A stretch of 58,750 bases of DNA from Pavona decussata (Eukaryota), in NCBI GenBank assembly GCA_977016875.1, contig CDRNST010000540.1, forward strand, positions 124,001 to 182,750. Direction: 5' to 3'. The notes beneath the pieces are model-generated. The model was given only the letters and a program-made list of their open reading frames with translations. It did not search any database and was not told the origin of the DNA. The position numbers were made by a program, and so were the translations under genes. Below, piece after piece: positions 1 through 36,628 of this stretch; position 1 is the first letter of the stretch, and the number at the start of each line of letters is the position of its first letter.

Positions 1-1634
1 CACTTTCACGGCTGAAACCATTTACCTAGTGATCTGAAGTGTTAACATCAAACGTGTGAAGAAGTTAATTACACATCAAACTTGTTTGACAGCAGCTATT
101 GTTTATGGACCAATCGGAATTTTCCGTTGCTGGAGCGACGGGAAATTCGAACGCGTTTGTTACAGTCCCTTCTTTTCCTTCTCTCCCCCAGTCTCTTCTC
201 GTTTATTTCTCCTCGCTCCAGTCTCGCTGCGCTGTGAGCGCACCCTCTCGACTGACCAGAAAGGGACTGCTTGCAGTCTAAAAAACAGTTTGCAAAACTT
301 TGTTGACCAGTCGATAGTCACTCCGAGCGAGCTAGTTCCGAGCTGGACTCTAGACTCTAATCACGTGCGCCGGTCACACCACTCGATGACGTCCGTTCCA
401 CCAATCACAACGCGAGTCTTACACTGTTCATTGTATAAACTCAAATAATGCATGACATTTTCAGCAGTTCCCGATTATCTTAAAAATTTTAAAGGACTTA
501 AGCCAAACTAAGTCTATACGTGTTGCTCCAGTGACCGTTTGGATCTACATCTCATCTTTAGACATAATTTACCGTCTTTCATTATATTATTATTGAAAGG
601 AAGTGTCAGTGTTGCGAAGTAAAATCATGAGGTAATCAAATGTCCCGGGAAGGCCAAAACTTTCCAACGAACAATGTTGGAAAATGCCTCGCTAATATCA
701 GGCGGGGGGGGGGGGGGGGGGGAGGGATAGACACTGCTGGAATTGACTGATGCATGAAGTTTCCGAACGTGAGCTTGTATAAAAAAATGCGTTCAGTTGT
801 ACGTTTTTGTCAATGTTGGTTAAATATGCTAAGGGCCGCTCCCCATTTGGAACTGTTGTTAATGAAGACTCACTTCTCAGCCGATGATGTTCTCCAAGTA
901 CTGTTGCTAAAATGCCATGAAAAAACATGATTTGAAAATTTCAAGATGAAAGAGCCTTTCGCTGTTGGAAGAGAAGAGCTCATCGAGATTTTTTACGGGT
1001 ATTTGTCCCTCAAAGGTCACAGTTTTCTCTCTGAATACTGTCCCCGACCAAATATCCAGCACTTGAAGAGAAAACAGCAAATAAAAATTTGCCGCTTGAA
1101 AGGATGGTATGCAATCCAGAATGGCGTTGCTAAGTGGTATCCAAGCACGTGATCAAGTTACGTATAACGCATGTTTGCTCCTTGCTAGAGAAAAATCTAC
1201 TGTACACCGCAAAACGTTAAAAAAGCTATAATGACACGACCATAATTAATATTTATTGATTTGTTAAATACGTGTGTCATGTCTTCTTAAAATAATGGGA
1301 CTCATATTGGTTAATTTTCTCATCTTTTTTTGTCGGATCAAAAGTTGAAGGAACAGACATTATGTTATAGTTAACATATGCTGTAAAAATACTCAGTGCC
1401 GCTGAACAGTAAGGTCAGTTGATTCTTGAAGAGTTAACTTTTTAAGGAAAATAATCGAAACTTCGAACAGGCTCAGTTGATCTCAACAGCAGATTTTCGA
1501 CACGAAACCGCCGAACAATGGCAAGAACCGCAGGCTCATATGATTTCTCGAAGATTTAATTCCAAGACTAGTGTTCAATGATCTTCACTATCAAGCCACA
1601 TCATTTTATCATGTACTAGTTGTCTTTTTCTTCC

Positions 1635-4600
1635 TTATAAGAACCGTGGTATGACTGTAAACGGTAAGATGGGGTGGGTGGCTTCTAAGTCAAGAGCTGT
1701 CATCAGGCATTCGCTTGCAGCCTCGTGCTCTTCTTGCGCTTCTAACACCACGCCCAGCAAATGCCTAAAATAAATCATACGAGACAGTTCAAAATTTCAC
1801 TATGCTTTGAAATTTTTGTCACCATATTCAAATGAAAGAAGGATAAGTCCACCTAAAATTAGTTAAAGTGCTACTGTGATCAAAACTTTACCTTTCCTTT
1901 TATCTTCAGCATTCAAAAGTGTAGGAGGAAAGTATTACCTCGTGTATCACGAGGAGACAGGAATATTGTTACTCCCCACTGGATGAAATCGTTGAAAATG
2001 ATTTTATCGAGAGGACTTCAATTGCAAACATTTTTCTCATGTTAAAAAGAAAAAAAAAAAAGAAAGACAACAACAAAACCAAAACAAGTAAAAGCGCTTA
2101 CCAAGCTTCAAAAGCTGTTGGATCGATGTTTATCGCTTCACGGAGAACTTTTTCGGCCATCACAAGATTCCCAGTTTTATGATACAAAGAACCCTGTAAA
2201 GAAGAAAATAGTAAACAACTATAATGACGGATGAATGAAGCATGGCGGAAAGCTCCCTCAAACGTGGACACTGCTTCCAAAACATTTAACGATTTTAAAG
2301 TTTCGCAAAATGTCGACCTGATATCTGGTGAACACATTACATTTGCTAGAAGCAAGCAAGAAGACAAGCAAACAAACAAACACAAAAAACAAGCCAAATA
2401 AAAAAAAACAAAAAAACAAAAAAGCTAACTAAAACGAAGATCTGAATTTTTAAGAAGCAACCTTCTTCAAAAAATGCTAGGGAAACTGAAGAAAATTGAA
2501 AACCACCAACGTTTTGGACATTCAACGTGTACGTTGGATGAGGCAAGATGCACTTGACAATGTAGTAAAGTAAAACTTTCAATTTAAGTGGAACAGTAAT
2601 CAAAATTTACACCAAAACAACTAGATTATTCCCTCTTGCCTTCCGTGTGATATTTGATTCGGACTGGACCATCATCAACTATCACACGAAAAAAATATTG
2701 AATTCATAATCTAATCGTTGAATAGACAATGAAGGTTGAACCAATCACCTTCGCATATCGCAGCAGCTCGGGGTTAATGTCTACTAATTACTGTGAAATA
2801 CTGCTTACCAAGTGTTGAATGCTGGACACATGACCAGGGTTTATGGCGATCGCGTTATCAAAGCAATTCTTGGCGTCAGTGTAGCTTTCACGGATCTCAA
2901 AGATACGACCACGCTACAAAAAGCAGTGACCAACAAATATCTTAGCAACCAAGTTTTATTTATACCCAACAGTATGAAAACATGTTTGCCAGCTGTTGAT
3001 ACTACATTTACACTAGTCTCATGCGCAACTGTTCGTTGTGTCGTCACGCAACGCTCCTCCGTAGGAGGACCATTGCATGACAACACAAAATCGGCTGCGT
3101 AGGAGACTAAAGACAGACTTAAAAGCATGCTCTTTTTCCCGCGAAAACTGACGTCATTGTCAATTTTGTGATACGTGATTGGCTTGTTCGTTAGACCGCA
3201 AACACAAAGGAAAAGGAATGTGGTTCGGTTTACAGCAGCCGTTTGTGGGGAGGAGCGTTGCGTGACGACAACGAACGGCTGCGTAGGTGACTACATTCAC
3301 ACTCGCAAACTTGTATTTGCCAACACGAGATTGGGGACGAGTTTGCAGTGCGAAGGCGCCTTAAATCTTAAAGCCCTGATTTCAAAATGCGCTTTCTCTC
3401 CACTGTTCTTTTTATATTTCTTATGGAATTAGTTGGGAGAATGTTTTCAAACATCAAGGTATTTTATTCGTCTTTGGCGATCTTTTCCGTTGTTCTCTTT
3501 TTCCGTTTTTTTCTCTAACCCTAACCCTAACATCTTAATTGGGCAACAATTGTTACTCAAAAAGAGAGAATTACTCTATCCAGTGGAAAAATCACTAAAC
3601 AGCACATAAAATACAAAAATTGGACCACAATTTTCCCACTACAGTAATAACTGGCTTTTCGACGATTTATTTTGCTTCCATTGAGTGTTTCAAACAGCGA
3701 AGTCTCCTGTATTTGGAATTTACAAGGCCTCACGAAAAACCGAGTTTTCTTGCTTAGTTTTGCAAGTTTATTCTTTGTGTTTTTTTGAAAATGATTTTGT
3801 TGTAATTTCAAACCTGGAAGAGAACATGCGGGGACAATGGAAAAATCAGGTGCGCCTCCTGTACACATGCGTTTGCCTCAGCGTCCTTCTCCATGGAGAT
3901 GAAAACGTCAGCTGCCACAGAACACAAACGAAGTTAAATGGTTGTTACTAGAATGGATACTCGTTGTGATGTTTACCTAACAAAAATCTTATTTCAAACT
4001 TTATAGTAAAAGAAGTCACATCAAAATAGTGTACGCCTCGAACCCGGGTCATTTGCTTCATATAGTAATGGAAATATTTAACTTATTTCAGAGAATTAGC
4101 CAGGCCTAAATAGTGTATACCAGTGCCAATCCTCCAAAACAGATGTTCCCTGCCTAAATGGAGCTCTATTCTCTCAGTTCTCTGCCTAACAAATGGGCTT
4201 CTGTTCTCGTCACGTCGGGGCTATCACGATTAAGAATTCACTACATTGTGTAAACACCATAAGGTGTCCAGCTTTGTTTTGGAGTATCCATTCTAGGAAC
4301 AACCCACGGTAAATACTTCATGATGGCTAACTTGATAAACAATCATAAGCAATCGTAATTTTCGAGAACGACTGGCCCTAGTCAAAAACAGCAATTACAT
4401 TCACCAGTGCTACGCTGCCAAAAAAAATCCGCAAAATGGGTGTGCATCTTTTCGTTTTCCTGAATGACAAACACAGGCAAGATCTCAGATCGAAATGCAC
4501 TCCATTCCACACCCCCTCAGTCAATGTTGCTTGATGATCCGACAAATTTGTGCACCAGGGCCCGATTGTTCGAAAGCCGATTTACGTTAATCCACGATTA

Positions 4601-10472: not shown

Positions 10473-13400
10473 TTACAGTCCTAAGCACAGTTCAAGTCTG
10501 GTCAACAAGTCAGTGGCTTTTTTGAACGCCTCTTGGGCTTGCTGGGAGTCTTGGAACACCTCCTTTGGGGTTCTTGCTGGCACGTGTTTGTTAGGATAAC
10601 GGGTGGTATCGTAGTAGCTGGCCAATGGTGCCACCAGGGATGTCACAGCTGGGCCTCCTGGCAGCAAAGAGAGATCATACGCCAACTTCACCAAGTCGTG
10701 ACTACACAGCTGGCTGTCGGCGACTCCCGAGAGTGCATAAAGTGCTGCTTTGAGAGCCTTCTCTGCGACTTGATGACACTGGAAGCACACGAGGTAGAAC
10801 GGCGGATCTCGGACAGTCAAAAGAAGTTTAACGGAACGAAGATCCTCTTTACTTTGATCCATCCAAATCCTTGACAAACGTTTGTTGGGCCCCGCGTAAC
10901 GTCTGCTGGATGATGACGCAAAACCAGTGAATCTCGGGTTGTGGCGACGGAAATTCTCGTAGCTTGAGCGCTGTCGTCGAGCTCTTTCATGCCAACGTCT
11001 AAAGAAGTCGTAATCCGGCTGTTCCCTCGCGGAGTCAGGTTCATGGTGTTCTGATCCACCTTTGGATAACCTATCCCATTCGTTTTGGATGAACTTCATG
11101 ACTTCGTTTGCAATGTGTTGCATGTCCATGTTCTTGTCTGGGTGCCAACGGAGATAGAGGCGTTTGAGCGCCTTTTTTCTTTTGTCCTCGGGAAGTTTCC
11201 AGATTTCAGCCAAAGCTTTACGCACCTCTTCTATAGCGTCTTCCAACTTCCTAGGCTTGGGAGGTTCGGTAGCTGCTGCAGATGATGTTGACGGCCCTTC
11301 TTTAGTTTGACCACTTTGTCCAGGGTCTCCTGTGTATGGCACAAGCTCCATTGACTCTGAAACAGGCTCGTCTTCCATTGAATTTTCCTCCTCGAGATTT
11401 TGTTGCGGTCTCCTGATCTTGTAGAGGTCTAAGACATCCACTTCTTTATTCTCGCCGCCAATATCTATCATGTATCTGCTGAGAAGGTCGTTTTCTCCTT
11501 TTTGCTTCCTCTCTTGACTGTCCTTTTTTTGTTTGCTGGGCTGTGATGTTTCCACTCGATGCAGAATCTTTGCATAGATGTACTTGGGTTCTTCGTCAGT
11601 AGAGTCTTCTCTTTCAAAGGCAACAAACTCTCCTTGCCGAAAATAGAAATCTCCGTACTGCACAAGGAGGTAGTGGAGCTGTTCGGGAAATTCTGAGCCA
11701 AGTTCGGGCTCCAGGCACTGTGCTTCACCTTCTTCGTGGTCTTCCGTCACTCCAGCGTTGTCAAGTACGGAAGAAATGTCATCAGGGGATTCGCATTGTA
11801 GAATTCCTGCCAGATGTAACCAGCTTTCTTTGCTGATGTGACATCCCGTCAGATAGTTTATTTCTCTACAGATATCAAAGCATGCTTTACTGGACTCTAC
11901 ACCGTGTTGAATGTATATGTGCTTTGTATCATTTTCTTGCCCTACAAAACAACCTGAGTACTTTGGTCGTCGGCTTTTTGGAATAGGTGTATCTGTTCTT
12001 TTGTCCATTAACTCTGTGGACAACTCTTCCATGCAACTGATGCGTAGGCCCTTTTGGAAGCTACGAACGTTGTTGCGGACGTCTTCTGTAAGTTTGGCTT
12101 TTTCATATTGAGACTTCAGGATTCTCAAAATTCCGTTGACAAGTTGCTGAGAATACAGTATGTGACGCAGGCGATCTGTAGCCTGGCATTTCTGCTCTAC
12201 ATCGGCTCGGCATCTCTTCTCTCTACATTCAGGATGAAGTTCTTCTCTTACCAGTGTTCCCAAGGATTGGGTCCTCAAGTGGCCTGGCAAAAGCTCGACA
12301 ATTTGCGGTGGTTGTGCAAACGATAAATCATATTTTATCAGTTCATCTAGGAACTCAAACATGGAATCTGACAACCGATACTTGTATTGAGGACAGTCAA
12401 AAAGCACCAAGTCTGTTGAACGTCTAAGAGCCTGGTCACTGTTTGGAAGGTACAGTTTGTCAATCTTAGCCAAGGGATTTTCGTACTGTTTATCTCCATG
12501 TCGTCCTTTTAAAGCGAACAAACTAGAAAACAGTCCAAAAACAGCTTGTTTTGCGGCCCTCATCTCATTGGCGTGCATCTTCTCGTCTCCGCATGACTCT
12601 CTAAGATTACTCAAAAGTTTGGCAAACTGCACAGGTGTTGCTTTCTCCATGGCTCCAAGTCGTTTGAACAAGTGCTCAAAAGTCCCGTATTCTCGAGGGA
12701 CTCTGTACAGATAAGGCGGCAACTCTTCATCGAGTTCATAAGCTAACTGGTCACAACGGACGAACACACGCCCATCCTCGACAAGAATGCAAGGAATGGA
12801 AGAAAGGCGTTGCGTCAATGTATCACATATCTTTGAACACGACTCAGAATGATCACTACTCGTGCAGCCACTAGCTTGTGTGAGAAACGTGTAGACTTCA
12901 ATCATTATTTGACTCAGCAATCGGCGTCTTGGCTTTGGTATCTCTCGATCTGCACGCTTGGAGACCTGCTTCGAAAGATTTATTACGTTGTCAATGACCT
13001 GATTCAAGGAGGGCTTCTGGAGAACCTGCAACTTTGCTAACTTTGAAGACTTTGGATCTGGAACAGCCCAGGAAGGCAGAAGAGACGCAGTTGTCCATAC
13101 TAGCCTCTCTTGAGTGTCTGGGACTGAATCCTTAAATTGCGTAAATGGAGGAAGTTGCTCCTGACTTCCACTCTCAACCAAATGCTGTTTGTGAAGGTGA
13201 ACTAGCTCATCACTTGCTGTTTGCGAAGCCACAAACTTGACTGTAGAGAGGCTACACAGATAGTTTTCATCGTGCAGCGGTTTTTCTTTCAGAAGGTGTG
13301 TAACAAGCACGTTGGATTTCTTTTCCAAATCAAGACGACTTGCCTTGTTCGCGTGCGTTGCTTGTGTGGCCACCTCGTTAGCAAAAGTTTTGAACTCATC

Positions 13401-16400
13401 TTTGCTGACTTCTTGTTTCAGCCCAATTTCACGAAGAAGATTCAACCAGCCAGACTTTTCGTCAAAAGGAAGTGGTGGCTTTAACTCTGGGGGTAGCATC
13501 ACTGCAAAAACTTTCACGCCTGGATCATAAAAATGCGAAGCCGTGTGCGGTGTTTCGGAGGCATCTGGAATGAATGCCAGACGTCTCAGTGCATTAATTA
13601 TCCTGGGACGTTGACTCTCAATGCTAACTCCCAGCAGGGATCGTCTAACGTACTCAAGATGAAGCATTCGCGTTGATTGCTTGAGGATTGGAAACTTTGG
13701 AAAAATGAAGTTGACGTAACAGTCCGTGTGGCTTTTATCCCCGGCACCTAAAAGCTCTCTGTACAGACGGTCCAACTTGGGTTCAGGTGCCAAGAACACG
13801 CAGTTGTTTCCGTCCATCCAGACGTCCGATTCGTCCGTTGGTAGACCTGTTGGGACGACATAAATTGATGGAACATTCTCAAGGGGGACAAAGGTTCCAC
13901 GAAACGTTTTGAAGAATGGCAGTCGTTTTACAGTTGAAAAAGACACAACGTCCCGTTTCAAAGAATTAGCATCTTCTTGAAGGAACTGTAGAATCAAGAT
14001 CATTTCATCTTTATAAAGGCTACCAGAGATGTCTGTTTCTTTCATCAGGTGTTCCAACACTTTCACTATGTCTTGTGTGGAGTTGGGCTGCGACAGACAT
14101 GATTTGAGAATGACAGATACATTCCATCTACCATCATTGCTAATGAGCTTGCCATCAACCTCGTGGCATTTGAGTTTTCGTAACAGCTTGACAACGTTTC
14201 TTTGGCCGGACGACCATGCGTCTGAGGTGGTCAAGTCAAGGATTGCCTTTCCTTTGGAAATTGGAGCTAGCATTCCTGATTGAGTAGGTAGGATTGGCCA
14301 TCTATTCAACGGCTCAAGAGAAAACGTCTCCGAGTCTTTATCGTGGATTTTGACCATAAACTCCCACAGTAGCTGTAACCACTTCTTCGAAGGGCCTTCA
14401 TTCACATCCCATGGGATGAGGTTGCTTGTTGCACACCAACTGGCGTTTTCAGTACTTCGTAAGAGTGATGCGAGAGCAGGGATGTCAAATTTTTTGAGCA
14501 CCCGTTGATTCGTGGCAAAGACTTCTTTCTCAATGTCAAGTAAAGACATAGCAAGTGTGTGGTGGATAAATAGAGAACCTTTTTTTGGAACCAAGTCAGC
14601 AAAACGGCTCAGGAACACTGGGTTCTCTTCCTGAAAACGCCTGAGTACCCCATCTTCAGTCAGTAGCAAAGGCAATCCAAACATGTCTGATGCAAACTTG
14701 GCAGCCTTCATGCAGTAACTCAGAATACAAAGTACTCCCACCACTGAGTTAAGTGCTGTTTCTTTAACAGGAGAAGGTAGTTTACCGATGTTAGTCCGAT
14801 CTGTTTTGAGAAACTGAAGCATTACCTCAGGGGTAATTTGCCTTACACTTGTGCCCGCCTTCTTGAAGTCTTGAAAAAGTTGATGGGACGAATACAGGAG
14901 CTTAAAGCCAATTTGCAGGAACATGTTACAGCGTTTTACATCAATGTCGGCTGTCATTGGCATGGTGTTGAAAAATCCTTGTGAGGGAGTTATCCAAAAA
15001 CACCGAGTCACTTTTTCCCGGCCAATTTCGCCTGAAGTTTGACTTGCAGCCTGGCTGTTTTCCAGAGCTTCATAGAACGACTTCTTTACCATCGGTAGTA
15101 ACTTCTCATCTTGGTTACAAATCTTCCGAAATACTGACTCAGCCAAAATGGTCCACTGGTGATTTATTGATTCGAAATGAGGGAAGAGGTCGTGATACCA
15201 TCGCATTCCTTCATGGCAGGAGTACCCTCTGGAGAAGCAACCTACAGTATCATTTTTCAATCCAGGCAAGAAATCTCGTGCAACCAACATCAGTGAGACG
15301 TACGCTTGAGCTAACACTGTCGTCTTCATGAATTGATTCCACGTACTCCCAAATCCTTTATCATTCTCGTCGCGCCACAAGTTTCGTCGTGCAGAATCGA
15401 GGTAGAAATGACCATTGACATGGACAGGAAGACCTGTATTTACAGGTAATGGCAAAAAACAAAAAGCCCTATGTTTAGGCACTTTCCTGGCTCTGTAACT
15501 GGTTGATGGAAACTTGAACTGCTCTGACACCTTTGCTGCTATGCCACCGCGAGGTAACAAACCGTAATGTTGACCATCTGGAATTTCCTCCTCTTTATCG
15601 CTGGGCTTTAAACCAACGCACTGATGAATGAGCCATTTCTCTTCTCGAATGGTGTCTTGAACTAGTAGCGGGTATGTAATTCCGAACCAATCAATTTCAT
15701 TTGTGCCCACTGCCTTGGAGTTTTTGATGTGATCTGAAAGTTGCTCCCGCTGTAAAGCATGTTCATCTGTTAGCTCTGCAGAAACAGAGTATATTGCTTT
15801 CACTTCACCGTCTTCAATTTGAGAGAGTGAGATTTTTTTTAAATGGTTTAGAAACAGGAGGATTTCTTTCGCCTCATCGGTGAACATGTTCATGAAAGAT
15901 GCCATTTGTTGGTGGGAGACTTGCTCTTCTGATATTAATGATTCCATGGACATTTTCGGGCCTCTAAGAGGGAACCGGAACATTGTTGCAGATGTTAAAT
16001 CGAAATGTTCCTCAAGATAACAAGGAAATATGTCGCTGTAGTCGGATCGCTCTTCTTCTCTTATTGGTTCAATAAGACGCCCAGGACTTCCTTTTGTCGC
16101 ACCGGGAGCATAACGACAGTGAGGATCAAGGATACAAAGCGTGTCTCCATTGGAGATAAAGCTTGGACAATCGGTGAGGTGGTATACTGCGTTAAAACCA
16201 ATCCCATACTGACCTGTTTTCGTTGGATCTTCCGCTTTGCTTCCAATTCCTAGCCTCTGTATGCCTTCCAAATCCTTTTCTGAGAATGGCCTGTTGTTGT
16301 ATACGCACAATGCAGGACCTTGTAGTTCCTTCCAGTTGCTGCTTAAAAGTCGCTCTGTGGGATGGTTGCGAGGGTCATAAATAAAGTGTATCTCACTCGC

Positions 16401-22400: not shown

Positions 22401-23278
22401 AAGCATGGAGGCGTAAGCTTGACTTCCAACTCGTTCTGACAACAGAACATTCCACTCAGCTGTTAGATCATTCTGACAGTCCAATCCAGGCCATTTGAGC
22501 CCACGTCGGTTGTCGGTTAACCCAAAGTAGCCATGAACGTGAACTGGAAATCCAGTTTTAGCGTCTGCATCAGGGGGAAGAGGCAAGAAGCAAAAGATTC
22601 TTCCTCCAGTTGATGGAAGAGCTTGGCGATCTGAGGCATTCAATGGTGTAGCAAATCCAACCCATGGAAGGAGGCCCAGTTCTGATGACAAGTGTTTAAG
22701 CCTTGAATCTCGAACGTCAATCTGATGGTAAACAAGCCACTTGTGATTCGCTAGGGAGCCTTGTTCATCCAACTCCTCGACAGATAAGGGCAGGGATAAT
22801 TTTGTGTTTGTGACACGCCCTTCGCTTAACAGCTTCACTTGCGTCAGAAGGGATTTCTTCTTTTCTCGAATCTCTTGTCGACAGCTGTCGCTCAACCTCA
22901 CGGTAAATAAATGCATTCTAATGTTGCTTTCATTTACTTCAAACAGAGTTATTTCTTCGATGTTCTTCAAGAAAAGGAGAATAACGGAGGCTTCCTTTCT
23001 GAGTGCATCAAATAGGTGTCGAACTTTCTCGGGGGTGTAATTCATTTTCGATAAATCGGATGGCTCACTTCGTAGCGGAAAGCGGAAAAGAGTTCCGTTA
23101 TAGAATTGCGTTGATATCTTGCAGTCCAGGACGTCCTCATACGGGATGAACTGGTCTCGGCATTGTTGAAGAAGCTGGTCTTTCAAAGAAAACTGTCGTC
23201 CTGTTTCACTTCTTCCAAAGTGTTTTTCGTGTGGATCAAGGAATGCTATAGCGTCTCCACTCACAATACTTGGGAGAT
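10473..23278 (-). CDS. SACS: Giant terminal coding exon of the sacsin-like gene (12,806 coding nt)
   Basis: Uninterrupted 4263-codon ORF in the ORF track, extended to the acceptor tttAG at 23280/23279; the stop is at 10473-10475. Confidence 0.95.
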
Positions 23279-26200
23279 CTAAACGTATGATGAAAAACGA
23301 GTTTCTTAGTATGAAGTGGGGTGTACCTCTCTTTGGGCCTTTTTACTCCCTGATTAGTGCCGCGGGTCCAGACTATAACAAACCTGAAAACAGTTATTCT
23401 AAGCTCCACAACTTTAAAACACAGTTACTCAAGAGAGATGAGGTTTGCTCCCCCTTCACATATTATCCTTCCGATGAGTACTACACTAGAGGAGCAAAAA
23501 CCTACTTTAAATCCTATTGAAAGCCCTGAAAAGCAGCTGTTTAATTTAGGTTCACGTTCTCCTAAGCTTACGTTTCTCCATGATTCCACTTACCAGTCAC
23601 ATGATAAACGGAATTGAAGCCTATTCCAAAACGCCCTACTTTCAAGGGATCGTCCTTCTTACTACTTTGCATGAGTTTTTCCAGGTTTTCCCAGTCGCTG
23701 TCTTTGAAAAGAGCATCGTTTTGCGCGTACAAAGCAGGGCCCTGGAACTTAGCGAGACTGGGATCGTACAGGGAGTTCCTTCCGTAGAAGGCTGGGCGCG
23801 AATCAAGAAGGAAGGAGACCTTTGTGGCTTCGGCATCATCTGCATTTTGAATGATTTCCTATCATGGGAAATAATACAAGGTACGTTAGTACACGTGTTA
23901 CTGTCGATTCAGCCTGGCTCAGGATAGTAACAAAGATCTAAAGAAGATAAGCAGGACAAGGGCCGTACGACGTGACGCAGCTCCATTTCGTTGCATTTTA
24001 CACCCAAAACGTGTCTCATAGTACATTTATCTTAAGCCGTTTTGCACATTTGATAGACAACAACTACTTTAACTACCTCTTACAATTTCTGCAACTGGCA
24101 TGTAATTCAACAAGGAATTCAAGCCTAAAAACTTCATAATTGTCTTAACTGAATCGTTTTGACCGGAATAAGTGCAAATGGAAATGCGTCAGTAGTCGTT
24201 GTATGTGATTCACGTTCGTTCACTGTTTTTCAGTCTTTTTAATCTCCCGGGACAGAAGTAATTGGCATGCGCTGTTGTGGTGTCCCTGCCTTCGTAATAG
24301 TTGTTTACCCCCTGTTATCTTGTATTTTTGTGTGTCTATAATTATTAGGCGAAGCAAATAAAATAAATAAATAAAAATAGAGATGCTTTCGTTTTTATAC
24401 TCACACGTCTGACAATACGACAAGTATTTTAGCGGAGTATATGTTAATCTCATCCCCGTCATTTTTAAGGTTACCCGATACCTTCAGAGGTGTCTCGCGT
24501 TTAAGCGATGTAGCGCGTCCAGTTTAAACTGTAGATACTTAAACCCCTATATCAAATTAAAGCTTATAGAACTGACTATCAAACCATACCAAGAATTTTG
24601 AAATAAAATAAATTATCGAATTTTTCACGACCTCTAATTGCGAGCGTCCGAATCACCTTTTTAAAGCTACAAGTCAAAGTGAATTTTGTGTTTTGCTAAT
24701 CTAATTTGCTCCTCAGTTTCCGGACCCAGCAATCGCAGTGAAAAGTTATAGAGCATTTTCAAAATAGGATGAAAAAAATGTGAAGTAATCGTACAAAAAT
24801 CGCTCTCGGAGAAAAAATATTTCGAAAGAAAAAATTCGCAGACACGTTTTTGTTGTTAATATGCTACTGTCCAAATTTGAAGGCAAACGAACAAATTCCT
24901 TTTGAGTTTTAGCTCTTTGAAGTGGCTCCTACAAGTGAAAAAAATTGATTCGAGAAAACAGCGCTAAAAATTCGGCAATTCATTTTATTTCAAAATTCTT
25001 GGTTTAGTTTGATAGCCAGCTCTATAAGCTTTAATTTGATATAAGGGTTCAGATATCTACAGTTTAAACCGGCCGCGCTACATCGCTTGGACGCGAGAAA
25101 CCTCTGAAGACACCTCTGAAGGTACCGGGTAACCTTAAATACGTCACAGCCGTATCTTACAATTTGGTAGTAGGGGAGCTAAATAATCTACATCTCATGC
25201 GAAAAGAGGGAGTTTAGCTAACGGAGCCAACTCTCCACTAAACAACCTTCATTGAACCGTAACTACAATGGAGTGAAATTTATCGACGGTTATAGACCAC
25301 AATCTGATTTAATGCTTTGCTTGACAAATCATAAAATTTTCGAAAGGTTTATCGTCAGGTTAAAAAAAGAAGGGATGAGCTCAGTAAACTTTACATACCT
25401 TCAAAATTTGTCCTCCATCTGGATATCGCTCAAGGATGCTTTTTAAAATGTGTGTGAGAGGCGGTCGCTTCTGACCATACGACCTTCCTGTTGTGAACGA
25501 GAAAAGAAAAGGTTACTTCAAGCCTTGTAGACCTTGTACTTCTTATAACGGCGAAGAAAGAAATAATCGAAAACTTCCAAAAGTCTTTAAGAAAATATTA
25601 AGAACAATTAAACAGCTTTATTGTCTTAGTGTTGCTCTCATTTATCAGGGGCAGTCCACGGTTCATTTAGGTGGAGAACTGTTCAGAAGACCTTTATTGC
25701 CGCAGAGATTCAAATTTAGTTTTAAAGAAAATCTGGAGTTTTCTCCGGCAAAATGTCAGTACGAAATTACGCTGGAAAACTTACTCTTTGTTTTCAGAGG
25801 GGAAAAAACCCCAATAAAAATGCGAAATAAGGTCAGCTAGCATTTTTGTAAAACTAACATTTCAGCTCGTAAATTGGGGAACATGATAAGGTTCCGTTTC
25901 TTTAAACGTTCTGCAACTTAAATTTTCATCTCAACTGAGTATCTCTGAAAACATTCGAACAGATTAAACTGTATTAGCTTAGACAAGTATGCCTTTAAAA
26001 GGGCACAAAACGATCTGGGAACATGCACAGGAGACATCATTTTAAGAATTTTTCTTAAATGTTATCGTTGGTTTATACAAACTTGTGACCATCTAAAAAG
26101 GGGCTCATCCAAATTTATATAGAGCCATGTCAATTCAGTAAACGGACGATTCCAGTCAGAACCAGTTTATAATCCAATCCACCCCAAGAAAAACTGGAAC

Positions 26201-27274
26201 AAATCTTAGTACATCAACCCAACGAAATAAACGGAAGGAATTAGTTTTCTAGTATTAATTTTGAGAAGATATTTTGCTGAAGAAAGCTGTAAATTTTCTT
26301 AACGACTATAAATCCAACTTTTTTTTGAGGTCATCCAGGCAGATATCCACCAAAGTAGAACCGTTTGGTGCCTCTGTAAATTACGACATTAAAACGTAGA
26401 AATCAAAGTCTACAGAAAAAATCCCAGAAAACAGAAAGAAATGAAAATAAAGAGTCCCAATTAACGGAGTAAGCCAAACGTTGAACAAGACTGAAGCACA
26501 GACCTCGCATGCTTCCAAATTCATTTCCTCGTCAGTTTCTCTGATTTTAAGACGAGGGGGGTGTTTCCTCTATTGATAAATAAAATGGTGATTAAGTTTT
26601 GCTAAATGTTTTGGCTTTCAAGCATACAAACTTTGCCGCCTATTTCTCGGGAAGGAATATATAAGACCAATCGAAGAATGCGGCCAGAATGGTCTAGTAT
26701 CATCGCTACTCATCCAGTTTTTGAACTTCAATTGAATATTTTAGCTTATTTTACTGTTTCTAGAGACACTTTCAAATCAAAAAAGAATTTGTGTGCTGCT
26801 CTTGGTGAAGTTCACGAGCTGTCTTAAGCTCGCTTCAGTGAATCGAACATTTCAGTCAGGAGTTCAAAGTGTGATTGTCCGCAACGGCGGCCATATTTTC
26901 CTCGGTGTCGAGTATGGACGCGATTTTAAACTCGCATTTCAGTCCAGCGGCGAGTACAGTTCAAGTCCTAGAAAACTGACAAAAGTTTCCGTAAATATAA
27001 ACCCAGTAACTAGACGAACAACAAGTAACACACTTTACTTTTAAGATAAATGTCTAAAGGCCGAACAGAGCACTGATTCGATTGTTATCAGTAAATCGGA
27101 GCTTTGAAATTAGAGTTCGACGCGATTGAATTAATCTCGAATAAGAGTCGTTATTGCTGTCATTTTATTGAGCTATGATTAAAAAAACGAAAGATATCAA
27201 GTCACACAACTAACCCCCCTTTTAACCGTGTACCACTGAAACAAACCTTTCAGCTTTTCCTGAGACGCCATCAT
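10473..27274 (-). CDS. SACS: Sacsin-like protein (~4395 aa): 3 sacsin repeat regions (Hsp90/GHKL-like ATPase), DnaJ domain, C-terminal HEPN
   Basis: Exons: 27274-27247 (MMASQEKLK, tentative start), 25487-25399 ([30 protein letters not shown]), 23858-23594 (EIIQNADDA...[14 protein letters not shown]) and 23278-10473 (DLPSIVSGD...LCLGL*). Splice sites are GT..AG and phases join in frame (13188 nt). There are three E(I/L)xQNADDA / G(R/Q)(F/Y)GxGF / FRFP motif sets, a J-domain LRWHPDKN (~11136-11144), and [25 protein letters not shown]. Confidence 0.93.
24469..25134. mobile_element. Non-autonomous DNA transposon with ~160-bp TIRs and a TTAA target duplication (Kolobok-like), in a sacsin intron
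   Basis: ttaa|GGTTACCCGATACCTTCAGAGG...CCTCTGAAGGTACCGGGTAACC|ttaa with long imperfect inverted arms. RR..YY termini plus TTAA are the Kolobok signature. Confidence 0.75.
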
Positions 27275-29329
27275 GTGTTCGGCATCTCCGGGTTCAAGCT
27301 GACACCGTTTACGGGCTGACAGAGAGTTTGACTTCCTCGCTGTACAACAGAAGAATATAGTTTACAGTCCAGATAAAGTTCTAGACAAGGACAAGACAGG
27401 GACGAGTTGAATTCGCAAGAAAAAGAAAACAAAATTGTTAATCGGGTTGGCACACGACCAGTGCATTATTTACTATAGCTCCTGGTATGTCATAATTGCT
27501 CAACTTACAGGCGGAAATAAGGAGATTATGGGGATGCGACCGGGGTTATATTTTTTTAGTAAATACCAAGGCATAACCATTTGCAGCGTTTAGTAAAATT
27601 GTAGAATTAGATGGCGGTGTGCTTTGGCTTATTGCCTAGAAATTCCTGGGAAGATGTACCTTACAAATATGGCCGCAATAAAGTTGAACGTGATTGATTT
27701 ATCGGAATCAAGCCCACAATCAGCACAATGGGAGCTCTAAACTGTAAGCGTTAACAAATACCACAGACAACTGTAGACACAAACACCTCTTTCAAATTGA
27801 TAACACTCCAGTTTATATTTTCTATCGTAAGAAGCTGAGCATTCTTAAATTCGCTTCGAAATATTGACTATGGACAATGAACTGTATCGTCTCTATGCCT
27901 CAATAAACAAATAACCTTGAAGAAACATCTTTGGAGACATCCAAAACCGACAGAAATTACTTTTAGTCTGGCGTGTTCGATACAATTAAGAAACGAGATC
28001 ATTTGTTCTTTAAGTTCAGACTAAAAGTTCGAATATTTTTTCCAGTGTAACATCGTTTTGGCTGAACCGGCAACGCCATAAAGGCGGAAACAAGCCGCCA
28101 TTTTCCTTAAACATTTTGCACATTGTATTAGACGAAACATTGCCAGTCGCTCCGTGGGACAGCAGCTCAGTCTAATAACGATTTTGCTAAGAAACGTTTT
28201 GGCCAGATCTTTAGGATAACAGAAGTTAACATTCAGTAAATAAGACTTACTGAAGTGGACAGTTTGTAGAATGCTGATTTCGATTGGAGAAAACAACGGC
28301 GAAGAAGGTGCACTGAAGTTAAATCAACTTTATTAATATAATCACTGAGCTTATGTCTTTGAAAAAAACCTGCGATTATTCTCGATTAGATCAGGCAGGC
28401 TCTTGAGTAATTGAAATCATAAAAATAACTGATCACTGGAATAAGCTTCAATCTGTTTGTCTACCTTGATGTGCCCTCGATATAAGGAAACGTTGTTCGG
28501 AAAATAGTTTACAGTATCACGGTATCAGAATCACTTGAAGCTTGTTTGTTTGCAGGGCTCGACAGCCGAACTGAACCCGGGTTAGTGTTCAGTTGTGCTA
28601 AATTGAATATCTTAGAATTTCACACGTTTGTTTCCTCAAAAACGGGTCATAGATCTGGTTTTATCAAATTCCATAACGCCGGTTTCGAACCAGGGTGAAG
28701 AAACAAGAATCTTACCCGAGCTAGCTTACGCCCCGTCGGCCATATTCACTTTTCGGCGGCTGTTCGTCCTCTGATTTCCTTCACGTTTTGACTTCTGAGA
28801 ACCGATGGACTTTGTAGCAAGAAAGCAAGAAGACAGTCTGCTGCAACCTATTCTTAGAATGTGGTCTGATTTTAAGAAAACGACAGTTTTTAAACCAATC
28901 ATATCGCTGTAAAAAGCCCAATAGCTTGACCGGAAGAGAAAGCTAATTCTTGGAAAGCTCATTTACCATTCGTGGAAAGTGGACAATCGGTTGCTTGTCT
29001 ACTAATCTCATACTTGATCACATTCCAAACATTTTACCCCACAACAGTGTTAAATCAATGTCATATTTACTTCACAACCAAACCTTTTTTGCCCTCCACC
29101 ATCGCTGTAAGCAATAGTCTTCTGCACTGACTTTGTTTGTTTCGTCACGCAATGCTGGGGAGGAGCGTTGCGTGACGACACGGAAAACAGCTGCGCTGGA
29201 GACTGTAATGCGGTAGCGTTTTTTAAAATAGTTTTGCGTTTGTTTTTGTTTTTTTTGCCGGAAAATGACAACCTTTTGAGCGAATTAAGCCGACAATTTT
29301 ACTGCTACAGTTACAGCCGGGTAAATGTT

Positions 29330-29530
29330 TAACAAATAGATTCCATTTTGCCGTGCGTCTGTACTCTGATAACGCACAGATGACGTCAAAACGTGATGAG
29401 AACAAAGAAGTACGCTACGAGCCGGCGGCGTGACTGATGTTCTGACGTCCTCTGTGCGTTATCACGTCTTTGACGTCCTCTGCGCGTTATCAGAGTACAG
29501 ACCCACGGCAAAATGGAATCTTTTTGTTTT
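29330..29530. mobile_element. Palindromic MITE
   Basis: gattccattttgccgtgcgtctgtactctgataacgc...gcgttatcagagtacagacccacggcaaaatggaatc. Confidence 0.7.
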
Positions 29531-30626
29531 TTACAATAACCAAGACATATCAAAAATTTTCGTGAGCCAACATCGCGTTGCCTGAGCTGAGACAAAAACT
29601 TTCCAGCAAACTCAGTTTGAAACTACTACACACATGCAACTGTGATCGTTTAAATTAGAGTATAATCCAAAAAAAATTCACTAACAATATTTTCAAAACT
29701 AACCTTTGTTCCAGTAGGAATTTATGACCCCAAAATGTTACAGCATGTCACTTGTCGCTTCACTGCATGTCAGACTGTGATCGATTACTCGCCCTTGCCG
29801 GATTCCTATTGGCGACAAATTTGGGCAAGTAATTTCTTCTTCTCACGTCACCACAAAGTTCTCGTTTTTTTTTTTTAACCTGGTTAAGGTCACTCTCAAC
29901 GGTTTTTGTCCAATTTTTAACCGGACAGTTTTCCTTTCTTGCGAAAACTTGCCTTTGTTTGTCCATAACTCGCAAAAACAGTTTGCAAAACTTTGGTGAC
30001 CAGTCGACAGTCACTCCGAGCGAGCTAGTTCCGAGGTGGACTCTAGACTCTAATCACGTGCGCCGGTCACACCACTCGGTGACGTCGATCGTGCGTCTAC
30101 AATCTAAGCACAAACTCCGTTCCACCAATCACAACGCGAGTCTTACACTGTTCATTGTGTAAACTCAAATAATGCATGACATTTTCAGCAGTTCCCGAGT
30201 ATTTAAATTTTTTTAAAGGACTTCAGTAGCCGTTTGGACCTACATCTCATCTTTAGACATAATTCACCGTCTTTCATTATATTATTATTGAAAGGAAGTG
30301 TCAGTGTTTCGAAGTAAAATCATGAGGCAATCAAATGTCCCGGTAAGGCCAAAACGGGCCGACCCCCGGAACGAACAATGTTGGAAAATCCCTCGCTAAT
30401 ATCAGGCCGGGGGGGGGGGGGGGGGGATGGACACTGCTGGAATTGACTGATGCATGAAGTTTCCGAACGTGAGCTTGTATATATATAAAAATTCGTTTTT
30501 GTCAATGTTGGTAAAATATGCTAAGGGACCGCTTCCCGTTTGGAACTGTTGTTAATGAAAGTTTGCTACGTACACGAGAAAGTTAGTCTGATTTACGCAG
30601 AACAAATCAGTTGTGTTAGATTTGAT

Positions 30627-30786
30627 TTACAGTCAACCCCGTTATTACGGACACCGCTGGGACCAAAAAAAAGTGTCCGTATTACAGAGTCCTTATTAAG
30701 CAGGTTAATTTTAAGGAAAGTGTATGGAGCGGGACCAAGAAAACTGTCCGTAATAACGAGTGTCCGTAAGGCGGGGTTTCACAGTG
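30627..30786. mobile_element. TA-flanked CAGT-terminal MITE (Tc1/mariner/pogo-like)
   Basis: tacagtcaaccccgttattacggacac...gtgtccgtaaggcggggtttcacagt; related to the elements at 52927-53398. Confidence 0.6.
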
Positions 30787-31816
30787 CATGCAGTCCGCTT
30801 AATTGTTGGAAAATTTACATCTTGATCGCGGACACGAACAGACACTACTGTGAATGATAATTTAATTAATTACTTTTGTCTATAAGTCTAATTCTCGTGA
30901 CACGAGAAACAACATTTATATATATATTTAATGATTCAACTCAACATTTATCATCTCCTTATATTCCATGAAATGTTTTCGCCGACCTGTGATTGGTCAG
31001 CATATGGCACGTGACTCAAGAATACTCACCTCTCAGCCGATGATGTTCTCCAAGTACTATTGCTAAAATGCCATGAAAAAACATGATTTGAAAATTTCAA
31101 GTTGAAAGACCGTTTCGCTGTTGGAAGAGAAGAGGTCATCGAGATTTTTTACTGGTATTTGTCCCTCGAAGGTCACAGTTTTGTCTCTGAATACTCTCCG
31201 CGACCAAATATCCAGCACTTGAAGAGAAAACAGCAAATAGAAATTTCACGTTGGATAGGATGTTATGCCATCCAACATGGCGTTGCTAAGTGGTATCCAA
31301 GCACGTGATCAAGTTACGTAAAAGACCCATTAACGCATTTTTGGTCCCTGACAGAGAAAAATCTACTGTACACCGCAAAACGTTAAAAAAGCTATAATGA
31401 CACGACCATAATTAATATTTATTGATTTGTTAAATACGTGTGTCATGTCTTCTTAAAATAATAGGACTCATATTGATCAATTGTCGGATCAAAAGTTGAA
31501 GGAACAGACATTATGTTATAGTTAACATATGCTGTAAAAAATGCTTAGTGCCGCTGAACAGTAGGGTCAGTTGATTCTTGAAGAGTTAACTTTTTAAGTA
31601 AATCTTTTAAGGGAAATTAATATTATAGGAAAATAATCGAAACTTCAAACAGGCCCAGTTGATTTCAACAGCAGATTTTCGACACGATACCGCCGAACAA
31701 TGGCAAGAAGCGCAGGCTCATATGATTTCTCGAAGATTTAATTCCGAGACTAGTGTTCAATGATCTTGACTATCAAGCCGCTTCGTTTTATTATGTACTA
31801 GTTGTCTTTTTCTTCC

Positions 31817-34800
31817 TTATAAGAACCGTGGTACGACTGTAAACGGTACGATGGGGTGGGTGGCTTCTAAGTCAAGAGCTGTCATCAGGCATTCGCTGGC
31901 AGCCTCGTGCTCTCCTTGAGCTTCTAACACCACGCCCAGCAAATGCCTAAAAAAAATTACATTAGAAGGTTAATAAGTTCATCTTGCTTGGAAATTGTTG
32001 TCACCATATTCAATAAAAGAAGGTTAAGTCCAGCTAACATTAGTTAAATCGACGCCGGTTGAATGGAGCTTTATTTCGGATTTTGTATCACGAGGAGATA
32101 GGAATATTACTACTCCCCACTGGATGAAATCGTTAAAAATGATTTTATCGAGGATACTTCAGTTGTAGACATTTTTCTGATGTAAAAAGAAAAAAAAAAT
32201 TTAAAAGCGCTTACCAAGCTTCAAAAGCTGTTGGATCGATGTTTATCGCTTCACGGAGAACTTTTTCGGCCATCACAAGATTCCCAGTTTTATGATACAA
32301 AGCGCCCTGTAAAAAAGCGAATAATAAACAACTATAATGACGGATGAATGAAGCATGGCGGAAAGCTCCCTCAAACGTGGACACTGCTTCCAAAACATTT
32401 AACGATTTTAAAGTTTCGCAAAATGTCGACCTGATATCTGGTGGACACATTTCATTTGCTAGAAGCAAGCAAGAAGACAAGCAAACAAACATAAAAAACA
32501 AGCCAAATAAAACAAAAACAACAAAAAAGCTAACTAAAACATAGATCTGAATTTTTAAGAAGTATTCTTCTTCACAAAATGAGTGGGACACTGGAGAAAA
32601 TTGAAAACCACCAACGTTTTGGACATTCGACGCGTGCGTTGGATGGGGCAAGATGAACTTGACAATGTAGTGGAGTTAAACTTTTAATTTAAGTGGAACA
32701 CTAATCAAAATTTATACCAAAACAATTAGATTATTCCCTCTCGCCTTCCGGGTGATATTTGATTCGGACTGGACCATCATCAACTATTACACGAAAAAAA
32801 TATTGAATTCATAATCTAATCGTTGAACAGACAATGAAGGTTGAACCAATCACCTTCGCATATCGCAGCACCTGGGGGTTAATGTCTACTTATTACAGTG
32901 AAGTAATGCTTACCAAGTGTTGAATGCTGGACACATGACCAGGGTTTATGGCGATCGCGTTATCAAAGCAATTCTTGGCGTCAGTGTAGCTTTCACGGAT
33001 CTCAAAGATACGACCACGCTACAAAAAGCAGTGACCAACAAATATCTTAGCAACCAAGTTTTATTAATAGCCAACAGTATGAAAACATGCGTGCCAGCTG
33101 TTGCTACTACATTCACACCAGTCTCATACGCAACTGTTCGTTGTTGTCACGCAACGCTCCTCCCTAGGAGGAGCGTTGCGTGACAACACAAAAGACGGTT
33201 GCGAAGGAGACTAATGACAGACTTAAAAGCATGCTCTTTTTTCCCGCGAAAACTGACGTTATTGTCAATTTTGTGATACGTGATTGGTTTGTTCGTTAGA
33301 CTGCAAACACAAAGGGAAACGAATGTGGTTCGGTTTTCAGCAGCCGTTTGTGGGGACGAGCGTTGCGTGACGACAAAGAACGGCTGCATAGGCGACTACA
33401 TTCACACTCGCAAACTTGTATCTGCCAACACGAGTTTGGAGACTTGAGTTTGCAGCGTGAAGGCGCTTTAACTCTTAAGGCCCTCATATCAAAGTGCACT
33501 TTCTCCTCACTGTACCTTATAGATTTCTCATGAAATTAGTTGGGAGAATTTGATCAAATATTAAGACATTTTATCCGTCTTTGGTGATTTTTTTCTATTT
33601 TCCTCATGAATTGTGTCATTGCCCAAGCCCTAAACTGAAAAAAATAACATCTCAATTGGGAAAGAAATATTACACAAAAAGAGAGTGGACAATCCAGTGG
33701 ACAAATCATTAAACAGCAAATAAAATGCAATGATTGGAGCACAGTTTTCCCACTACAGTAATAACTGGCTTTTCGACGATTTATTTTGCTTCCACTGAGC
33801 GTTTCAAACAGCAAAGTCTCCTGTATTTGGAATTTACAAGGCCTCACGAAAAACTCAGTGTTCTTGCTTAGTTTTACAAGTTTATTCTTTGTGTGTGTGT
33901 TTTTTTTAAATATTTTGTTGTAATTTCAAACCTGGAAGAGAACATCCGGGGACAAGGGGAAAATTAGGTGCGCCTCCTGTACACATGCGTTTGCTTCAGC
34001 GTCCTTCTCCATGGAGATGAAAACGTCAGCTGCCACAGAACACAAGCGAAGTTAAATGCCTCATCATGGCTTACTTGATAAACAATACTTAACTACAGCT
34101 TTTGAATTGTAAACATGTTGAAAGAACCTATAAAAAAATATTATTTTGTCAGGAGGCGACAACCTTGTGCTGGAACTAGCCAATCTCGTACCCAGAGTCC
34201 TCAGGCTCTTTGGACAGCAGTTGGTCCCCAGGAGAGACTTTGGAGAATTTGAAAAAAAATTAATTTTTTTGATTGGCTGCCCCGTAACGGCTTCCATTGT
34301 TTTACCGCAGAAATCCTGCGGTAATAAAATTCCAGTACCCCAGAGTCTACCCTAACGACCAACCGCTGGTCAAAGAGCCTGAGGACTCTGGGTACGAGAT
34401 TGGCGTAGCAAGCGCTTCAGACGGCTTTTGAACGCGCGAAAATTGGAAATCGCGCGCAAATCGCTCTTACCCAATTTCCGCGCAGTCAAAAAGCGAAAAA
34501 GGCACAAAACCACACTAAAACACTTGCTACACAGGCTACGCTGAAATCGCAGACGAAAATAAAAGTAATTAGAAACGCACTACTTAGGACGACCCGAGGT
34601 CATCATTTCCTTGATCAAAATATCAACTCTTCTTCCTGGGCCGCCAAATGGGCGCGCCTCTTTTCCTTTTCCTGAATGAAAAACACGGCCAAGATCTCAT
34701 AAATGCACTCCATAGCGTACCACTTGCGAAAATACTATATTATAGTATTATGGTATTTAAAAGTTTTATTCAAAATGGAGGGGGGAGGGGAGTATCGATG

Positions 34801-36628
34801 ATAGAATTTTCGCAGTCAAATTTACGCGGCTAAACAAGAGCGTCAACGATTTTGTCCAAGACTGTAATCTCTGGGGACGGCGGGTAATGTTTGAAAACCT
34901 CCTTGAATTCTCCTTACCAATTGCGAGCCAAAGCTTGGCTTGTAGCGCCAGCACCGCGGGAACACTCAGTTTAACAGAAGTAGACGCCGCTTCATCTGAA
35001 AGAGCTTTCTCAAGGCGCACTGAAGCTGCGATCGAACTGGCTCCATCCGCTGGAAAAATTAACCAAATAAAAAATATTTAAAATCATAGAATTAATACTA
35101 GAATCCCGACTGTCGAATACAACAATATGTTTGCGCCGTTTTCGGAGGTTTGTTAAGGTGTCAGAATTCCTTAACTTTTCCTATAACCAATCAGATGGAA
35201 GACGCTGTTTGTCTCAGCCAATCAGAAGCAAAACCTCTTACGCGTTTTCTTGCACGTGGCATCGGTTGCATTTACAGCGACCGAGCACGTGTGTAAAACA
35301 TTACAGAGGCAAACATGGAATCCTCCATTTTAAACCCGCAGCTATCTTTTCAGAAAACACGAGTCTTTTAACATTGAATATGCGAAGAATAGTACGTAAC
35401 TATTCTTTGAATTTTTTTGTTAAAGGGAATCTCCACTCTCACAGCAACTCCAGGTTAAATTATTCGAAATAACGTCTACATTCCAAATTTCATTTGAAAA
35501 AAAGAGTAAATTAAATAACCTAACACGTGTTCAAAAATTTGCACGCCATTATCGCGTATGTTGACCTTTAAATCTCCTGCGCACCGCCATTTTGGATCTT
35601 ATGACGTCTCGCGGTTGCCACTGTTGTCCGGAAGCAGAAGCTCTTTTGTGTGAAACCATAAGGTAACCGTATGACGTCATGAAATCCGAAATGCCGGCGG
35701 ACAGAAAGTTCAAAATCGAAAATAGGAGATAGTCAAATCCTGTTTTGTCTAACACTGAAATATCATTGCCATGTTTTCCACCAAAAACTGAAATAAGAGA
35801 GAATTTTAAGGAATTTAATGTCAATTTGTTTCAATAGTAGAAACTTTCTTTAAGAATCTCAAATTCGAAGACTTTTGTACTGATACAAGATTCAAGACAG
35901 TGGAATCCGGAAATGGCGTGGACTGTGTGTTTGCCCTGAGTGACCTTTCTTCGAGCTGTAATTCGTTCATTGACCATTGACTTTGATTTTGGCTAATAGA
36001 CAGTCATTAGAAAAACGCGCCAAATGAATCATGACGAAGAATGCCAAGGCGCCCGTTGCCCAATTGCTCGTTTCGAAGTTCATAAAAGGACTGGGCTCCA
36101 GTTTATAAATTGTTCAATTGCCAGAAAGATCACATAAAACTTAGTAAGTTTACCAAGTCTGGTTGAGGCTGATTTAGACGGTACAAATTTTGCTTACGTC
36201 TGTCGCATGCGATTTCTAGAGCACGCTGCTCGCGTCATGCAAAAAATCGCACGCAACTCTCGTCACTCAACATTACCTATACCTCTGATTGTCGTAGGAT
36301 TTTAAAACATGTTTTAAACATACACGACAGTCGTAAACGAGTTGTAGGTTTGATTTACACGATACAATTCGTGTCGTAAGCGACAAAGTCGTACCGTGTA
36401 AATCGCCCTTTATGTTTCTTTGGGCAGTAACCAGGCTGTGACCTGTCAAAGGTGGTCCAAATAGGCCATTTTACAGTTGTGAACTTAGTGACCTGGCCTT
36501 GAATTGGAAGCAAGGCTGGCGGTGACCTTGTTTCGATACAAACCTAACTGCTTTTCATATGTAAATGTAAATGCAAACTAGTTAGCATAAGAACAGCATG
36601 ATCTACATATGAAAAGCAGAGAGGTTTG

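Follow-up and report, generated by a model that had tools for sequence, protein, structure and literature searches.

Studies of heat stress and immune challenge in corals repeatedly point to sacsin-like genes, and one Acropora sacsin-like gene is among the strongest balancing-selection signals of its genome. In the coral Pavona decussata, a gene of this kind lies on contig CDRNST010000540.1 (C540) between two copies of the 3' end of TTC7, one of which lacks its 5' exons. This raises the question of how the arrangement arose, and whether the sacsin-like gene was itself duplicated along with the ends of its neighbour. We analyzed a stretch of 58,750 nucleotides (the window; C540:124001-182750), whose right edge is the contig end, together with the remainder of the contig (182,750 bp) and the rest of the genome, with searches covering 602 Mb in 1,180 contigs. 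We find that the locus is very probably the product of a fairly old head-to-tail segmental duplication of ~30 kb, in which the sacsin-like gene was duplicated complete and both copies were kept by purifying selection.

Two adjacent units of about 30 kb

The initial annotation of the window had described positions 281-5444 and 29974-35302 as diverged direct repeats and proposed a duplicated unit of roughly 30 kb, made up of sacsin and its neighbours. The repeats are real, with 20 collinear blocks of 80-97% identity at a spacing of 29.7-30.2 kb. Comparison of the whole contig with itself (self-blastn and global alignment of both units) places them as merely the right-hand ends of two adjacent larger units, and alignment of both units across C540 bears out the proposed size and content.

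C540 ~98,443-129,444: duplication unit 1 (self-blastn, global alignment); its right-hand tail is window 1-5444, and the initial ~25.6 kb are outside the window, to its left
Window 5445-35302 (C540 129,445-159,302): duplication unit 2, 29,858 bp (self-blastn, global alignment)
Window 5437-5452, join at 5444/5445: duplication junction (three-way alignment and flank inspection)
Window 35302/35303: right-hand breakpoint, inside a TTC7 intron, where similarity to unit 1 ends

The units are immediately adjacent and on the same strand, and every block between them is collinear, as expected of a head-to-tail duplication. Unit 2 holds, in order, a copy of a MED9 exon, the window copy of the sacsin-like gene with its candidate promoter block, and the five 3' exons of TTC7. 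Over 28,127 aligned bases the two units are 90.9% identical with 185 gaps, the large ones of which look like one-sided insertions or deletions. The repeat seemingly begins at window 281 because unit 2 is without 1,128 bp that are private to unit 1 (C540 123,153-124,280). Two other stretches are also found in one unit only.

Window 4556-4787: element resembling a short interspersed nuclear element (SINE), in an intron of the left, truncated TTC7 copy; in unit 1 only and absent from the homologous place in unit 2
Window 24448-25130: ~660 bp private to unit 2, within sacsin intron 1, with a 144-nt inverted repeat (24482-24625 / 24966-25109)

The SINE-like element, which has matches on more than 40 other contigs and many copies of 85-91% identity genome-wide, is present in unit 1 alone and was therefore inserted after the duplication. 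The ~660-bp stretch looks like a foldback insertion or a miniature inverted-repeat transposable element (MITE) that would likewise postdate it. Insertions private to one unit imply that time has elapsed since the duplication. Aside from the SINE-like element, the repeat sequence occurs only twice in the genome, and the contig self-comparison found no third unit on C540. The initial annotation had envisaged an expansion like those of immune and stress gene clusters; exactly two units are present here, and no array. None of the six intergenic open reading frames (ORFs) inside the unit has a Pfam match.

Two complete sacsin-like genes under purifying selection

A duplication of this extent had led to the prediction of a second sacsin left of the window, and it is there: an intact giant frame stands 30.1 kb left of the window copy, with SACS-domain matches at C540 109,665-117,732.

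Window 10473-25488, minus strand: sacsin-like gene, window copy; giant exon 10473-23279, exon 2 23595-23858, exon 1 ~25399-25488
C540, minus strand: sacsin-like gene, left copy; giant exon 104,337-117,206, exon 2 117,466-117,729, exon 1 118,621-118,722

The stop-free giant-exon frames comprise 4,290 codons in the left copy and 4,289 in the window copy (stop codon at 10473-10475), and by exon mapping both genes have three coding exons, in agreement with the gene models of Acropora. The window-copy ORF is identical to database protein P0151, and the exact protein of the left copy is P0033. A homologue search with residues 1-400 as the query returned Montipora and Acropora sacsin-like proteins as the best named homologues, at 64-70% identity; together with the label 'coral metagenome' on some of the sequencing runs in which the stretch occurs, this marks the host as a stony coral. 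In Pfam, the window copy matches SACS (PF25794) with 603 bits in three stretches and HEPN (PF05168) with 46 bits (cut-off 22). Its DnaJ match of 18.0 bits is below the cut-off of 27.8, and the HPD motif stands in a WHPDKN context in both copies. Both copies also carry the HEPN Rx4H motif, as well as one N-box motif in exon 2 and two in the giant exon; the N-box in exon 2 of the window copy is that of the first ATPase. No Pfam match was obtained for an N-terminal ubiquitin-like (UBL) domain, and the N-terminal end aligns directly with the first ATPase module, just as in the Acropora models. Hence, we file the genes as sacsin-like and UBL-less.

The proteins of the two copies are 91% identical with three gap columns, and neither copy is dead. 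At the nucleotide level, the synonymous divergence (dS) is 0.140 and the non-synonymous divergence (dN) 0.044, which gives a dN/dS of 0.31 with no 300-codon window above 0.44. With two relatives as the outgroup, lineage-specific amino-acid changes number 170 in the left copy and 148 in the window copy (p=0.24), and the probability that such a frame is without a stop after 400 neutral substitutions is 4e-9. The low dN/dS, the balanced branches and the open frames together indicate that purifying selection has acted on both copies ever since their separation. Both copies are probably expressed, and having two of them may bring a stress or immune advantage.

A short region upstream of the genes is conserved beyond the level of the unit as a whole.

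Window 28690-28990, minus strand: candidate sacsin promoter and leader-exon block; the unit 1 counterpart is C540 121,856-122,160

Located ~3.2 kb upstream of exon 1, this 300-bp block has an identity of 97% across the two units, compared with ~91% overall. Within ~180 bp it contains four conserved TTCN3GAA sites of the gamma-activated-site (GAS) type, at 28793, 28851, 28947 and 28969; the density of this motif across the contig is 0.54 per kb. The block also contains a short ATG-led leader (ATG at window 28743, minus strand) that is followed by a GTAAG donor, and taken together these features suggest that it is the sacsin promoter. As far as can be read from the DNA, this appears to be a cleanly resolved two-copy locus in which both genes and their common GAS-site upstream block are under constraint.

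Several points weigh against reading the locus as a duplication with two intact copies. Comparison of exon 1 (window 25399-25500 with C540 118,621-118,730) shows an in-frame ATG in the left copy (ATGGCA) where the window copy has ACAACA and, nine codons upstream, a stop. Through a difference of one base, the window copy has an AG acceptor that would place the leader ATG (28743) in frame, and the left copy is without this acceptor. This makes the start codon of the window copy, and hence its full intactness, uncertain. Divergence is also uneven along the unit, with non-coding values of about 0.07 to 0.18 and dS of 0.05-0.21 in windows, which may stem from unequal constraint or from gene conversion and leaves the date of the event uncertain. 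The upstream exons of MED9 were not located in either unit by motif scans and ATG-plus-donor scans. Finally, the exact 42-mer across the junction has 0 matches in the metagenome collection, and a second assembly that holds both proteins may share the individual or the reads, so that its independent support is weak.

Age of the duplication, gene conversion and family history

In a maximum-likelihood tree the proteins group as ((P0031,P0032),(P0035,(left,window))), with a support of 94 for the left and window copies and of 100 for P0031 with P0032. P0031, P0032 and P0152, the last of which is 96.9% identical to P0035, are located together on one 660,570-bp contig of a relative. In the genome studied here, the SACS-domain search revealed no P0031/P0032-type gene of comparable length (frame ~4,260 aa). 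These relationships are read most simply as the result of an older split that gave two lineages, one of which was duplicated in the relative and is not seen in this genome, and the other of which was duplicated here. Contig C221 (about 26-309 kb) carries a cluster of six loci that belong to another sacsin subfamily, with frames of ~3,750 codons; one of them, at 255,024-261,647, may be broken, its open frame being no longer than 848 codons. With lineage-specific gains, an apparent loss in a relative and this separate six-locus cluster, the birth-and-death label given to the locus in the initial annotation is a fair one, and the duplication described here would be one step in the birth-and-death history of this coral sacsin subfamily.

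The duplication could instead be far older than the dS of 0.14 implies and be shared with related corals, gene conversion having kept the copies alike; the seemingly lineage-specific pairs would then be a product of concerted evolution. The paralogues do pair by genome, P0031 with P0032 and the left copy with the window copy, and besides the uneven non-coding divergence one sacsin window has a dS of 0.053 compared with 0.10-0.21 elsewhere. A TTC7 exon with its flanks is moreover perfectly identical over 159 nt (window 32907-33065 and 2802-2960), even though one of the two lies in an unconstrained relic. This run may be a short gene-conversion tract; the introns next to it differ by 7-12%. These are weak hints of gene conversion between the units. 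However, frequent conversion would not be expected to leave non-coding DNA diverged over the whole unit, with many indels and private insertions, and P0152 has not been homogenised with P0031 or P0032 although all three share one contig of the relative. Within sacsin, uninterrupted identity reaches 146-170 nt at most, which is little above what a uniform divergence of 6% and conserved motifs would give. We therefore consider an older, shared duplication decidedly unlikely.

Paralogues or alleles

Another possibility is that the two units are two haplotypes of one locus that were set in tandem by the assembler. Corals offer a precedent for deep allelic divergence, given that a sacsin-like gene of Acropora millepora has a nucleotide diversity of >5% and two ancient haplogroups (bioRxiv 10.1101/867754; PMC8626496). 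C540 is also a small contig (182,750 bp), the end of which overlaps contig C877, with 100% identity up to the point where the two part, showing that the assembly graph is not clean in this region. However, the elevated diversity in Acropora is limited to a few kb inside the gene, whereas here a divergence of 9% with 185 indels extends across all 30 kb, intergenic DNA and TTC7 introns included. The genome-wide heterozygosity reported for two corals is 1.1-2.3% (PMC10236652). Furthermore, the join between the units is uninterrupted: it has neither an N run nor an overlap by which an assembler might be misled, and the two outer flanks are unique, single-copy sequence. P0033 and P0151 each have records on two contigs, and both occur on the longest of these, of 3,147,243 bp; a relative has three copies on one contig. 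Tandemly assembled haplotypes are thus very improbable. Balanced alleles would be two forms of one single-copy locus; the forms described here stand in tandem on one contig, with their own flanks and a junction.

That the locus is a tandem duplication matters in practice. Population scans that use short reads can, in this coral group, mistake the sacsin paralogues for alleles, and the two genes provide a defined young paralogue pair for testing divergence in expression or function.

Founding event and truncation of TTC7

At the junction, a TTC7 intron (the equivalent of window 35302) is fused to sequence equivalent to C540 ~98,443, which in unit 1 is located ~1.6 kb upstream of the MED9 exon. 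The join shows microhomology of about 3 bp and contains neither an N run nor a common repeat. A repeat-mediated origin was considered and rejected, as the two outer flanks have no similarity to each other and only a lone 22-nt SINE fragment is found near the left boundary. The microhomology of 3 bp and the lack of a repeat indicate that the founding event was not an unequal crossover between repeats; it would fit a microhomology-mediated mechanism better.

TTC7 was mapped with P0006, an 840-aa cnidarian protein found by a full-library search with one TTC7 exon, the N-terminal half of which matches Pfam TTC7_N at 274 bits. A PDB search with single TTC7 exons gave nothing, or generic tetratricopeptide-repeat matches only.

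Window 31829-58529, minus strand: complete TTC7 gene; residues 92-840 mapped exon by exon with P0006 (tblastn), with TTC7_N Pfam matches
Window 1647-5182, minus strand: TTC7 relic of five exons, 5054-5182, 3814-3912, 2809-2913, 2101-2193 and 1647-1763 (tblastn)

The complete gene is the only one in the genome, and its mapped exons have no internal stops; residues 26-92 are past the end of C540, on the overlapping contig C877. The part of it that was duplicated consists of the last five exons (window 31829-35038). Accordingly, the relic exons correspond to residues ~662-840 of the 840-aa protein. Residues 662-840 are present twice and residues 26-661 once, in the right copy only, and TTC7_N is confined to one genomic locus with no match left of the junction. 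When the exon pair is aligned at the nucleotide level, the first exon of the relic shows a 9-bp insertion and, at window 5075-5077, an in-frame stop made by CAA>TAA; the splice sites of this damaged exon are still present, and the other four exons are open.

The left TTC7 copy is hence dead, as had been proposed on the grounds of missing 5' exons and a premature stop: it has five exons with nothing upstream, and carries both the TAA and the 9-bp insertion. The accompanying idea that passenger genes decay while sacsin is retained holds for its second half, with purifying selection on both sacsin copies, but not for its first, given that TTC7 was truncated at birth. The end of the relic is the unit boundary and the breakpoint is clean, which indicates that TTC7 was cut at the duplication and never copied whole. 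That TTC7 (and MED9) were instead duplicated whole as passengers, the extra copies losing their 5' exons by deletion and decay, is hardly credible: the stop codon and the 9-bp insertion do show secondary damage, but the upstream end of the relic coincides to the base with the point where its unit ends and the next begins, nothing of TTC7 residues 1-661 is left between the relic and unit 2, and a later deletion would have had to end exactly at the unit boundary.

In the model that we favour, a single event copied a block that runs from ~1.6 kb upstream of the MED9 internal exon, across sacsin and its upstream regulatory block, and into the TTC7 intron, presumably through a microhomology-mediated mechanism (end joining or template switching). 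TTC7 straddled the right breakpoint, so that its inner copy received the last five exons only and was dead on arrival, the stop codon and the 9-bp insertion being gained later, while the full gene persists at the outer right edge. Sacsin, wholly within the block, was duplicated complete, and both copies were then retained as separate paralogues by purifying selection. Future unequal crossover between the two units is plausible.

A fragment of a second neighbour, MED9, is found on the other side of the junction.

Window 6495-6623, plus strand: MED9 internal exon copy in unit 2; Med9 model positions 27-74, open frame (Pfam PF07544 genome search)

The unit 1 copy of this exon (C540 100,020-100,148) is also open and has 3 differences in 129 nt compared with the unit 2 copy; the two are the only matches above the cut-off in the PF07544 genome search. 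As for a 5' exon of MED9, a motif match at C540 92,674 was considered and looks like chance. The locus resembles the boundary-gene truncation model, in which a breakpoint gene is whole at the outer edge and headless at the inner junction, beside the other end of the unit, and the TTC7 side fits this model. The back-to-back fragments of TTC7, which is headless, and of MED9, which may be, are thereby explained as the scar of a duplication and not as a promoter deletion.

Comparison with known systems

In two coral genomes sequenced with long reads, ~30% of the genes are tandem duplicates (Noel et al. 2023, PMC10236652), and phased Acropora genomes show recurrent tandem duplication with hitch-hiking neighbours (PMC12314368). 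The present case has much in common with the coral tandem duplicates of these studies: it is local and head-to-tail, its timing is lineage-specific, unrelated flanks hitch-hike with it, and stress- or immunity-linked families are enriched among such duplicates. It differs in having two units and no large array, and in that its junction shows microhomology, whereas PMC12314368 proposes non-allelic recombination mediated by repeats. Neither paper names sacsin in its main text. Since tandem duplicates are pervasive in corals, the event is ordinary in kind, and the locus is a well-resolved case of a known type.

[quoted passage not shown] The two Acropora forms are reported to be alleles of a single-copy gene, with no raised coverage, and separated before Acropora diverged from Montipora (bioRxiv 10.1101/867754; PMC8626496). 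Here, by contrast, the two forms are tandem paralogues that split far more recently than the divergence from the Acropora and Montipora clade, the likeness described being one of gene type. It is conceivable, though we think it unlikely, that the paralogues are the fixed, duplicated equivalent of the balanced sacsin polymorphism in Acropora, a permanent heterozygosity in which the translation starts have perhaps already come to differ. If this were true, a single haplotype would carry two functionally different sacsins.

Human sacsin (SACS), the protein of the Charlevoix-Saguenay type of autosomal recessive spastic ataxia (ARSACS), likewise has three GHKL-type ATPase repeat regions, a J domain (a candidate here), HEPN and one giant coding exon, but differs in its N-terminal ubiquitin-like domain, none of which was found here. 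Two 2026 preprints place sacsin beside the antiphage ATPase Tiamat, in a Tiamat / NO VEIN superfamily, and describe a defence role of animal sacsins as untested (bioRxiv 10.64898/2026.09.30.754977,.755639).

Right-hand end of the contig and other features

Contig C877 (1-27443) matches C540 167,026-182,750 (window 43026-58750) in reverse complement at 100% identity and extends 4.8 kb past the contig end, whereas its last 6.9 kb have no match to C540. It carries letters where C540 has N, and appears to be a redundant or branching assembly path. The split between the two contigs is at window ~43026, within a seven-transmembrane (7TM) open frame. This frame is intronless with 422 codons (window 42632-43897, minus strand), has a rhodopsin-family 7TM match of 72.6 bits and is nested in a TTC7 intron outside the unit. 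A 157-codon frame in a TTC7 intron (window 40135-40605, plus strand) has the appearance of a retroelement tail and no Pfam match. Inverted repeat copies of 83-88% identity pair window 8167-8303 with 54415-54551 and 45798-45930 with 57629-57761; they lie in intergenic DNA and TTC7 introns, and are probably interspersed elements.

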